NCBI RefSeq assembly: GCF_032062105.1 | Contig: NW_026926521.1 | Coordinates: forward strand, 1 to 64,000 | Direction: 5' to 3' | DNA: 64,000 nucleotides | DNA from: Saccostrea cucullata | Taxonomy: Eukaryota | Shown: positions 60,901 through 64,000 of the stretch, piece by piece | Numbering within the stretch: the first letter of the stretch is position 1 | Layout of the letters: each line of letters begins with the position of its first letter | Made by a program: the position numbers and the translations under genes | Notes under the pieces: generated by a model | Database searches by the model: none | Seen by the model: the letters and a program-made list of their open reading frames with translations, nothing else | What the model was told of the DNA's origin: nothing

Positions 60901-61502
60901 CTTGTTTACGTTAATTACAATGAAGGAAATTTAATCCTGGAACGCGATAATCAAGGGCTTAGAAGGAGGACTGTTAAATATCTTTTAGAAACAGGAGGTT
61001 AGTATTTAAACTAATTTGTGTTATAAAGCTGCTAATTATATAAATTTTACTTACTGCATCTTAAAAAAAAAGCATGAATATCTCAAACAATTTTAACGAA
61101 TGGAAACAATGTTTGTAGATTGTCTAATTAATAAAACATTGCAGAATGTGTGTAAATTTCCCCCAAACAGGTGTAATCTGATAGATTTTAAAGCATAAGA
61201 AAACATAAGCTAAATCCACGGGAAGTTTTCTTTTATTTTCTTTTAAAATTTTTGATTAAAAAACAGTTTTATTTTTCATAGCCATTGTTTTTATCGTGTA
61301 TTGTCTCGAAAAGTCATCAGAAAATCTCCTGGATGAGATGTATGCACAGAAACTTTCCAGCATCAGCTATGATTCCATGCTGAAGAATTTCAGTGCAAAG
61401 AAGAGGATACTTAGTATTTACAAAAAGTACAGTCGACATCAGCTTGTGGCCATTTGCCAACAAATCAATAATTTTAACAAGGAAATATTAGAGAAAGACT
61501 GA
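57968..61502 (+). CDS. Uncharacterised type I membrane protein: signal peptide, 11-residue coiled-coil repeat, TM/Cys cluster, cytoplasmic alpha/beta domain; disrupted in this sequence
   Basis: Exons 57968-57984, 58449-60048, 60147-60337, ~60595-60795, 60895-60997, 61282-61502 join in phase; one frameshift at ~58932 and a missing AG at ~60594. Confidence 0.6.
58540..59699 (+). repeat. 33-bp coding minisatellite, ~35 units (LNEHQKQVDGK)
   Basis: Unit ctcaatgagcaccagaaacaagtagatggaaaa; one 23-bp unit at 58924-58946; one unit has a 6-bp in-frame insertion at 59674-59681. Confidence 0.95.
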
Positions 61503-62267
61503 AGTTAAATGGTGAATTGAAGAGCAGAATAAGTATTGCATCTTGTATATGAAGTCCACAGAGAATACAATGTAAGTATAAGACAAAAGAAAAGTGTTTT
61601 CATTTTGAATTAATATTTTAACATTCTGTAAAGGACAGATATAGGCTATGCCTGCTGCCTAATCCATTTATGTTTTAGTACATAATAAAATATGTTCAGA
61701 TCAAATTAATATGCAAGCATATTGTGGTAGATTTACATCACTTTTTCAAATTTAAATTGAGAACAAGTAAGTCTTCGTTTTGTACAATTATTGATTAATT
61801 TAAAATATATTTTACTCATTGAATTGGATTGAACAATTATTGATTGACGTTTCCATTAAAAATTGAGCATAATTGATTACTAGTACTGAATGCAGTTCAA
61901 ATTTTCACTTTTCATGATAATGAGAATGTGAGACGTTATTATTTCCAAATAATATTTATCATGCATTTTCATACAAATTAAAGTACACGCATCGCCAAAA
62001 CACTTAATGTATTCTTGACTTTAGACAAATGGAAATATTTATTCTGAAAACAACTTTCCTATTTCTATGAAATAACTGAAAATAAATAACAACAGTATAT
62101 TTTATTTCATTAAAACATGAGATTGCATTTCAAATTTCAAATATTTTTGGCACAATTTATTACAAAAAAGGAAGACTTTAAAATCGATAACAAAAATGAA
62201 TATCAGTGATATCATATCTTTCCATGGTATAATATGAGACATAAAGCGTCAGTTATACAAAATATTA

Positions 62268-63218
62268 TCACAGAAATGTCGTGGCACTTGTGATGCTCAG
62301 GTTTTCAGTTGTCCCATACCCCGAGTCTGACTTAGCCAAGACCCTATGGCGAGGAAAGCCATTTTTCAAAGGAAATGTTAGTTTTTCTGCCATTGAGACA
62401 TCAGATGTAAGATTTTTTGGATCTGAAGCCATTTCATGAAGTTCATTCAGTATTTCTTGGACTGCTGCTTCGTCATGTTTATGCAAACTATTTTCATTGC
62501 TTTCAAATGCAAGGTTTTCATGACATTGTTCAAGCAAAGTGATTTTGTTAGTGGAAGAGAAATCTTTTGTCTCATTTACTTCACTTTTTTCCGAATGGGT
62601 TTCCAAAACATTATTTGACGGCGACTTAGTAACTTTTGTTTTGTTCCCCAATAATCCTCGGAAAAAGTTTTCAAAGCTGTACTTTCTGCATCGTAAGTCT
62701 TCGGTTTCTGGAGATTTCTTGCTTTGACAATATCCTTCAAAGAAACTCTCAGCACTAAGTTTCCTTATTTTGAGCTTTCCTACACCGTTTCGATTTTGGA
62801 AAGTGCGGATGTTATCCGAAACATCTCCTGCGCTAAACTTACGTCTGTTGCACCTAGTTTGCCTCTGTAATGACGTGTTTACGTCAGTTAATGAGCTACT
62901 ATTGCTTGTAGTCCTTCGAAAGCTTCCTATCCCAGAATCCCCTGTTTGGCTTCCTGTGCTGTACTTTTTCTTAACATCAAGTTCACAAAAGTCATTTTTA
63001 CTAATCTGGTCAGCATCAAGTTGTGAAAGTCTTTTTGTTTCTCCAATACAACTGTTTCTGTGTGTCACTTCTTTCTCTTTGTTTTTCTGAGATACACAAG
63101 ATAAACCAGTCTTCCGACACCTCTCTGGATTATTCGTTATGATATTCGACGAGACCCCGTTGACGGTCGAGGCTCGGGCACTAGGACCTTGGACAGTCCC
63201 AGCACCCGAGGCGTACCG
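62268..63218 (-). CDS. Putative stop-codon readthrough extension of the guanylyl cyclase (316 codons)
   Basis: Same frame as the cyclase exon; open from the codon after TGA 63221-63219 to TGA-TAA at 62270-62265. Confidence 0.7.
   Translation of the reverse strand, partial: RYASGAGTVQGPSARASTVNGVSSNIITNNPERCRKTGLSCVSQKNKEKEVTHRNSCIGETKRLSQLDADQISKNDFCELDVKKKYSTGSQTGDSGIGSFRRTTSNSSSLTDVNTSLQRQTRCNRRKFSAGDVSDNIRTFQNRNGVGKLKIRKLSAESFFEGYCQSKKSPETEDLRCRKYSFENFFRGLLGNKTKVTKSPSNNVLETHSEKSEVNETKDFSSTNKITLLEQCHENLAFESNENSLHKHDEAAVQEILNELHEMASDPKNLTSDVSMAEKLTFPLKNGFPRHRVLAKSDSGYGTTENLSITSATTFL

Positions 63219-63221
<3 letters not shown>
63161..63221 (-). promoter_or_regulatory. Candidate readthrough-stimulating RNA element
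   Basis: UGA-CGG, 8-nt spacer, 15-bp stem 63210-63196 / 63187-63173 containing three G-U pairs. Confidence 0.7.

Positions 63222-64000
<779 letters not shown>

Follow-up and report, generated by a model that had tools for sequence, protein, structure and literature searches.

The stretch of DNA considered in this study, to which we refer as the window, comprises 64,000 nucleotides (nt) of the oyster Saccostrea cucullata (contig NW_026926521.1, positions 1 to 64,000), and near its far end it holds what is, from comparison with annotated proteins, the 3' end of a gene for a receptor-type (atrial natriuretic peptide receptor-like) guanylyl cyclase. In this gene an in-frame UGA stop codon is followed by a stable hairpin and by 316 further open codons, and comparison with other oysters suggests that some ribosomes probably read through the stop, so that the cyclase would exist in two lengths. 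All features of the locus are on the minus strand. The exons found at contig C8658:62271-79582, on the same strand, match the entire Crassostrea virginica protein XP_078332427 (1497 amino acids (aa), labelled "atrial natriuretic peptide receptor 1-like"), and in the orthologous models of Saccostrea echinata and Magallana gigas the ANF_receptor, protein-kinase-like, HNOBA and Guanylate_cyc domains are present. The exons of the window gene and the two pieces flanking the stop were searched separately, and its 3' end is laid out as follows, where L003 denotes the locus of S. echinata (GCA_033153115.1) and L006 an oyster contig from a JGI metagenome.

63692..63802, minus strand: penultimate coding exon, core of the cyclase catalytic domain (splice sites read; 85% identical to C. 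virginica residues 1012-1058)
63222..63598, minus strand: last exon up to the stop, with the end of the guanylyl cyclase catalytic domain and a linker, ending ...EISAL (translation, Pfam, acceptor)
63219..63221, minus strand: in-frame UGA stop in the context UUA-UGA-CGG-U (sequence and translation; identical at L003:4848-4850 and at L006 1698-1700)
63211..63218, minus strand: 8-nt spacer CGGUACGC from the stop to the inner stem (length kept; a single substitution, A>G, in L006)
63173..63210, minus strand: inner hairpin of 16 base pairs (bp) with a 6-nt loop, arms 63210-63195 and 63188-63173 (folding in three species)
63161..63167, minus strand: 3' strand ACCGUCA of an outer helix, whose partner UGACGGU (63221-63215) includes the stop codon (ViennaRNA; kept in S. 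echinata and L006, with U-A changed to U-G)
62271..63218, minus strand: 316-codon extension in the cyclase frame, ending ...SATTFL (open frame, ratio of nonsynonymous to synonymous rates, homology to uninterrupted tails)
62265..62270, minus strand: tandem stops TGA TAA closing the extension (sequence; TGATAA is also found in S. echinata and in a Magallana-like contig)

The last coding exon begins at 63598, directly after the acceptor ttgcag, and its first ~40 residues match positions 143-182 of the 183 positions of Pfam Guanylate_cyc (PF00211), while against XP_078332427 the exon is 57% identical from residue 1058 on. After the TGA (63221-63219) come the codons CGG TAC GCC, and no further stop interrupts the frame for exactly 316 codons, a run whose probability from base composition is 3e-10. 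Over the same length, 12 and 39 stops occur in the other two frames, and past the double stop each frame of the next 948 nt contains 15-26. The initial annotation, made from the letters of the window, had already read ...EISAL TGA CGG TAC GCC, 316 open codons and the closing TGA TAA, and all of these were reproduced by translation (63218-62271 for the open codons, 62270-62265 for the double stop). It had also described a GC-rich island in AT-rich DNA, and the measured GC content indeed rises up to 0.61 at the stop and hairpin, as against 0.2-0.4 in the surrounding DNA.

A first concern with any in-frame stop is that it may be a nonsense allele of one individual or an error of the assembly. A profile-free exhaustive search with the 316-residue extension returned only four relatives, and their genomic loci were then compared with the window. 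In S. echinata the tail is 85% identical, the stop region reads ...EISAL TGA CGG TAC GCC, the same hairpin follows and 318 codons are open; in L006 the tail is 62% identical, the stop region reads ...ETSIL TGA CGG TGC GCC, a hairpin follows and 317 codons are open. Both keep TTA-TGA-CGG-T, the length of the spacer and the hairpin, so three species carry the stop-plus-hairpin module. The element TTATGACGGT is identical in the window, S. echinata and L006 while its flanks diverge, and in the three-way alignment the block TTATGACGGT.CGCCTCGGG, together with the 3' arm through ACCGTC, is almost invariant, the flanks of L006 being heavily substituted. Stop, context, spacer and hairpin are thus kept across synonymous divergences of ~0.4 and ~1.5. 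Since the same stop, context and hairpin recur in two further oysters, the UGA is, on this comparison, neither a private nonsense allele nor an assembly error. All the refuting conditions named in the initial annotation that could be put to the sequences turned out in favour of its interpretation. A genome search for paralogous tails gave none. A metagenome scan with the 16-base stop-plus-spacer motif gave chance matches only, in GC-rich bacterial contigs, and a longer pattern gave no ortholog; the protein collections searched yielded no transcript-derived protein from any species that bears the stop.

The hairpin behind the stop begins 8 nt past the UGA, where the 5' arm CUCGGGUGCUGGGAC (63210-63196) pairs with GUCCUAGUGCCCGAG (63187-63173). 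The 15 paired positions and three G-U pairs that had been noted there were recovered, and ViennaRNA adds one closing U-G pair, so that the stem has 16 bp and the loop 6 nt. The further pairing of UGACGGU with ACCGUCA at 63167-63161, also noted initially, is formed in the ViennaRNA fold as the outer helix. The fold energy of the window is -49.8 kcal/mol (z -5.86, with 0 of 200 shuffles reaching it), and the same structure is obtained in all three species, with energies of -49.8, -49.0 and -43.6 kcal/mol and z of -5.9, -5.0 and -4.1 for the window, S. echinata and L006, respectively. The antisense strand folds 7-15 kcal/mol worse than the sense strand in all three, which points to selection on the mRNA strand, as the initial argument from the G-U pairs predicts. 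The homologous stretches of the two oysters without the stop have no such hairpin (M. gigas z 0.27; C. virginica z -2.1, with a different fold).

When the whole named structure is placed on the three-way alignment, standard pairs make up 95.7% of cells, whereas sliding the partners by 1-3 columns lowers this to 32-50%; a shuffle control on this alignment pairing is uninformative with three sequences. For the inner hairpin alone 95.8% of cells are paired, and five pairs are altered on one side with pairing retained. In the whole structure nine pairs are altered on one side yet still paired (G-C to G-U, G-U to A-U and the like), and three pairs have unpaired cells, two of them at helix ends; that 9 of 12 changed pairs keep pairing has a binomial p of ~0.004, which is a rough value as it assumes that ~1/3 of random substitutions preserve pairing. 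Additionally, the synonymous rate (dS) over the 31 hairpin codons is depressed, being 0.12 versus 0.41-0.69 and 0.6 versus ~1.7 (Fisher p for depressed synonymous change 0.016, 0.009 and 0.054), and the ratio of nonsynonymous to synonymous rates (dN/dS) in these codons is ~0.55-0.63. By these rates the 31 hairpin codons are under weak protein constraint that is overlapped by RNA constraint. A repeat or transposon as the source of the hairpin was considered but discarded, since the 1.17-Gb genome contains the 96-nt element only once.

A stable hairpin a few nucleotides past an in-frame UGA has the appearance of a selenocysteine redefinition element (SRE), and one could suppose that the UGA encodes selenocysteine, with the hairpin acting as in SELENON. 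For this, a selenocysteine insertion sequence (SECIS) would be looked for, and the check proposed at the outset was made: with the Rfam models, which are not exhaustive, no SECIS-family match at E up to 10 was obtained in window 61000-64000, L003 or L006, and Rfam gave nothing else of relevance at any of these three loci. Besides, the 3' untranslated region (UTR) past the double stop is short and AT-rich, the stop-less C. virginica and M. gigas have a gap at the site and not a Cys, and the site falls in a variable, disordered linker without a redox motif. We hold selenocysteine to be extremely improbable here.

The outer helix is of consequence for a different explanation, namely A-to-I editing, by which ADAR would deaminate the A of the UGA within a duplex of ~25 bp and would turn the stop into UGG (Trp) in a fraction of the mRNAs. 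The A of the UGA is indeed paired with U inside a long, conserved and sense-strand-specific duplex, and it is known that ADAR editing occurs in oysters (PMC9989829). However, the target A has a G on its 5' side in place of the favoured U or A, and a 5' G is the disfavoured ADAR neighbour in all metazoans examined, oyster included (PMC9989829). For a switch of this kind UAG would be expected, yet all three species have UGA, and editing gives no role to the 8-nt spacer or to the C at +4. Editing of this stop is, in our opinion, quite improbable, and readthrough by the ribosome, to which these last features are relevant, is taken up again below.

If the extension is made as protein, it should evolve as protein. 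The tail, from ER.RK to the end, was compared as a codon alignment with Nei-Gojobori estimates, and the pairs of stop-bearing species gave the values below, with differences listed for the first, second and third codon positions and Fisher p for nonsynonymous versus synonymous change.

Window and S. echinata: dN/dS 0.19; codon-position differences 22/22/61; Fisher p 2e-15
Window and L006: dN/dS 0.14; codon-position differences 68/58/136; Fisher p 4e-30
S. echinata and L006: dN/dS 0.15; codon-position differences 66/56/125; Fisher p 3e-30

For the two pairs that include the window, the corresponding ratio of proportions (pN/pS) is 0.23 and 0.32 in the true frame versus 1.1-1.6 in the two shifted frames. 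Judged by these rates, the extension evolves as protein and is under purifying selection in the species that bear the stop, so that the dN/dS below 1 which had been forecast downstream of the UGA is found, at 0.14-0.19 and with a third-position bias. In C. virginica (1497 aa, three RefSeq isoforms) and M. gigas (1517 aa) the orthologous cyclases, which are annotated as "atrial natriuretic peptide receptor 1-like / 2", share the exon layout of the window gene at the 3' end, and their last exon runs through this tail without interruption. Tail motifs that are invariant in all five species include GKLKIRKLSAESFFEGYC, DSGIGSFRR, HDEA.VQEI.NELHEMA.DP and the C-terminal SATTFL. Between C. virginica and M. 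gigas the tail dN/dS is 0.06, with dS saturated, versus 0.14-0.19 in the stop-bearing pairs; with the reservation that dS in this comparison is saturated, the higher ratio in the stop-bearing pairs would fit a product that is made less abundantly.

In a Logan contig from a Magallana-like oyster (L004:421-546, run SRR20648584) eight consecutive A (423-430) divide the open reading frame of the tail into two predicted genes, probably through an indel in this contig or an assembly error at the homopolymer.

These rates also bear on the simplest supposition of all, that termination at the UGA is complete and that the tail is either decaying or produced from its own transcript or start. The latter is how NCBI has annotated S. 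echinata, where the tail is a separate uncharacterized protein, LOC133186688, with an internal ATG start. A decaying tail is ruled out by a dN/dS of 0.14-0.19 over a dS of ~1.5. As to a separate start, the coding conservation reaches upstream of the S. echinata ATG (ER.RKTGL.C), and this ATG is not conserved, being GTG in the window, where the first in-frame ATG of the tail is only residue 263 of 316; on both of these grounds the tail is not a separately initiated reading frame, and independent initiation was rejected for want of a conserved start codon. True termination as the whole story thus appears very improbable.

The NCBI gene in question lies at L003:5001-5810 ("uncharacterized protein LOC133186688", 269 aa), and the cyclase model of S. 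echinata ends at the UGA. This two-gene annotation probably divides a single readthrough gene, and the same division is likely in the annotation of other oysters.

A tail could also be joined to the cyclase by splicing, and for this a candidate exists at the very site. An exitron-like intron at 63244-63125 would be removed in some transcripts, deleting both stop and hairpin, while its retention would give the short form; the removal would join ...LPRRP-K-RCRKTGL..., and the hairpin would serve to bring the splice sites together or to regulate their choice. In a variant of this, the acceptor would be joined to the donor of the penultimate exon, with the phase again preserved. The interval and the part of it that lies behind the stop are the following.

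63125..63244, minus strand: candidate in-frame 120-nt intron, A/GTATGA...TCCAG/AG (GT and AG columns and length the same in three species)
63218-63125, minus strand: segment between the UGA and the candidate acceptor, encoding RYASGAGTVQGPSAR... (translation)

GT and AG stand at the same alignment columns in all three stop-bearing species, 120 nt apart and with the frame kept, and in L006, where the interval reads GTACGA...CTTCAG, a branch-point-like CTCTAAC lies ~14 nt before the CAG. That C. virginica and M. gigas both lack the stop and the hairpin is likewise in accord with splicing. On the other hand, the bases of GT and AG double as in-frame codons (AGT for Ser, CAG or GAG), so their conservation is expected anyway, and the interval stays a multiple of three because there are no indels. 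The interval has a GC content of 0.53-0.57, a poor pyrimidine tract and the donors GTATGA and GTACGA, whereas 11 real introns of this gene are AT-rich, mostly start with GTAAG and have T-rich ends. Splicing also leaves the UGA-C context and the exact 8-nt spacing unexplained. Just before the L006 acceptor, GGVSPDSNTKPSER still resembles the M. gigas coding GDVLPDSVIKTVER at saturated dS, which suggests that the stretch before the proposed acceptor is translated. The NCBI models of S. echinata end the cyclase at the UGA and contain no spliced isoform, although this last point is a weak one. In sum, we consider splicing around the stop rather unlikely.

Programmed readthrough of the UGA remains the mechanism that is best supported, and we would give it a probability of roughly 0.6, for the reason that the locus carries all the marks of described readthrough signals and of insect readthrough genes. 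In alphaviruses, coltiviruses, furoviruses and related plant viruses the signal consists of UGA-CGG or UGA-CUA, a spacer of ~8 nt and a stem of at least 12 bp, a similar spacer and stem have been described for Drosophila headcase, and the 8-nt distance has been proposed to bring the structure to the point in the mRNA channel where unwinding takes place (PMC3159437). Readthrough genes of insects are marked by TGA-C, a conserved stop, a downstream coding signature and an enrichment of conserved structures within 100 nt (PMC5100048). By analogy, most ribosomes would probably stop at the UGA of the oyster mRNA and release a cyclase ending ...EISAL, while some would decode it with a near-cognate tRNA and continue through 316 further codons to the tail ending ...SATTFL. 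Readthrough would be stimulated by the leaky UGA-CGG context, the 8-nt spacer and the stable 16-bp hairpin, since with the UGA in the A site the spacing would leave the hairpin where the mRNA enters the ribosome. We infer the decoding event, its efficiency and the role of the tail from the sequence alone. The proposal of the initial annotation that recoding yields a short isoform and another longer by ~317 aa is, to the same degree, supported by the conservation of the stop and by the coding constraint behind it.

Some observations weigh against this conclusion. The plant-virus motif includes xxG at codon +3, and the codon here is GCC. The stop codon is itself inside the outer helix, unlike in the viral signals, an arrangement that would also suit an ADAR substrate. 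The in-frame 120-nt GT...AG interval, whose removal would take out the stop, is conserved in all three species. Finally, compensatory changes in the stem had been anticipated, and this was borne out in part: the one-sided changes keep pairing, but no double-sided compensatory change occurs among the three sequences.

A translational bypass, with the ribosome hopping from the UUA before the stop to a downstream UUA, was also considered and rejected, as the in-frame UUA of KTGLSC is CUG in L006; to our knowledge, such UUA-to-UUA bypassing is not known for cytosolic eukaryotic ribosomes.

As regards the two products, AlphaFold2, run on a shallow alignment of six sequences, gave the tail a mean predicted local distance difference test score (pLDDT) of 40; a single helix, at tail residues 247-265, is confident, and the tail is accordingly predicted to be mostly disordered. 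Pfam gave no match on the tail above its cut-off, and the ESM Atlas gave no lead for it, with every score below 0.9. The invariant tail motifs RK.S, RRK.S, KIRKLS and FRR..S resemble sites of basophilic kinases, presumably PKA or PKG, and the end of the tail, -T-F-L (62271-62288, minus strand), fits what we take to be a class I PDZ ligand (S/T-x-hydrophobic). The end of the short form (63222-63236, minus strand), -S-A-L or, in L006, -S-I-L, presumably fits a ligand of the same class; all of these are readings of motifs. The -S-x-L end of the short form is kept between the window and L006 though the neighbouring residues vary (EISAL and ETSIL). If the reading of the kinase and PDZ motifs holds, the switch may govern where a receptor that produces cyclic GMP is located or how it is regulated by feedback.

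The comparison of the five oysters also suggests how the stop came about. In the protein alignment the stop-bearing species have ~14 extra codons exactly at the stop and the 5' arm, and C. virginica and M. gigas have no stop, no hairpin and ~14 codons fewer at the place of the module. The more distant cyclase tails P0007 and P0008, from other contigs, likewise run without interruption, and by this comparison the tail is the ancestral C-terminus of the cyclase. It had been expected that UGA-C would be conserved in orthologs from other bivalves, and this holds for S. echinata and L006, but Crassostrea and Magallana have neither the stop nor a sense codon at the homologous position. Because these two genera lack the ~14 codons, the stop-plus-hairpin module is specific to one lineage, and the simplest reading, made with no outgroup rooting, is that it arose inside the ancestral coding region in the lineage of Saccostrea and L006.

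To hypothesize further, and with less than even confidence, we suggest that a compact recoding cassette (UGA-CGG, 8-nt spacer, 16-bp hairpin, ~14 extra codons) was born inside an uninterrupted cyclase coding region and made a constitutive regulatory tail optional, as a molluscan cellular counterpart of the opal/sense switch of alphaviruses. Since a single local hairpin would govern the switch, conditions that affect RNA stability or decoding, for example temperature in intertidal oysters, could tune how much of the short form is made relative to the long form.

A full-text literature search found no paper in which readthrough of a stop codon is connected with molluscs, oysters or guanylyl cyclases, in agreement with the initial statement that no description was known for a mollusc cyclase. 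The mechanism is of a known type; the novelty lies in the phylum of the host, in the family of the gene, in how compact the signal is and in its having apparently arisen within coding sequence. We know of few cellular readthrough genes with a signal this clear, most having only a leaky context or a long-range stem. Abundant readthrough has been conjectured to be confined to Pancrustacea (PMC5100048); if confirmed, the oyster case would extend well-supported programmed readthrough to molluscs, and it would be an instance of a stop codon arising within coding sequence along with the signal that suppresses it. The cassette is short, local and portable, and the sister genera Crassostrea and Magallana, which make the same tail without the stop, are natural controls.

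Other features of the locus and its surroundings can be described briefly. Past the double stop there are two candidate polyadenylation signals, inferred from the letters.

62161-62156 and 62106-62101, minus strand: two AATAAA hexamers, ~105 and ~160 nt past the double stop

Outside the window, upstream on the same strand at contig C8658:117948-137154, there is a second set of exons matching the N-terminal receptor part of the cyclase, which covers aa 1-85, 117-165, 164-242 and 348-446 of the C. virginica protein and represents a partial duplicate in tandem or else a set of alternative 5' exons; the isoforms X1 and X2 of the C. virginica cyclase likewise differ at the N-terminus. At window 61336-61404 weak matches to plant microRNA precursors appear on both strands (E 2.9 and 7.1, far under gathering scores), most likely a chance AT-rich inverted repeat.

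Among known systems, the precedent for editing is the amber/W site of hepatitis delta virus, a UAG codon with a favoured 5' U. There, as in the window, the stop lies within a duplex, its removal extends the protein, and short and long isoforms result; however, the oyster codon is a UGA with a disfavoured 5' G. The SRE of SELENON shares with the window a stable hairpin a few nt 3' of an in-frame UGA, whereas in the oyster gene no SECIS was found with the Rfam models and there is neither Cys/Sec homology nor a redox context. The insect genes are closer, namely Drosophila headcase and kelch and several hundred candidates in Drosophila and Anopheles (Jungreis et al., PMC5100048), which like the window have a conserved TGA-C, protein-like evolution in frame, conserved RNA structure less than 100 nt 3' of the stop and extensions that can be long. 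The oyster gene differs from them in its phylum and in that the extension is, in its relatives, normal coding sequence with no interruption; its stop appears, with the polarity taken without an outgroup root, to have been born inside a coding region, where the insect-type alternative is a reading frame extending into the 3' UTR. With the viral type II signals (Firth et al. 2011, PMC3159437), which are also found in tobraviruses, the window shares a UGA followed by CGG, a preceding codon ending in A, the 8-nt spacer, a stem of at least 12 bp and depressed synonymous change over the stem arms. The differences are that the oyster signal belongs to a cellular mollusc gene, has its stop inside an outer helix and lacks xxG at +3, and that its hairpin is a local and almost perfect one whose loop has 6 nt, where the stems of the viruses enclose ~100-270 nt.

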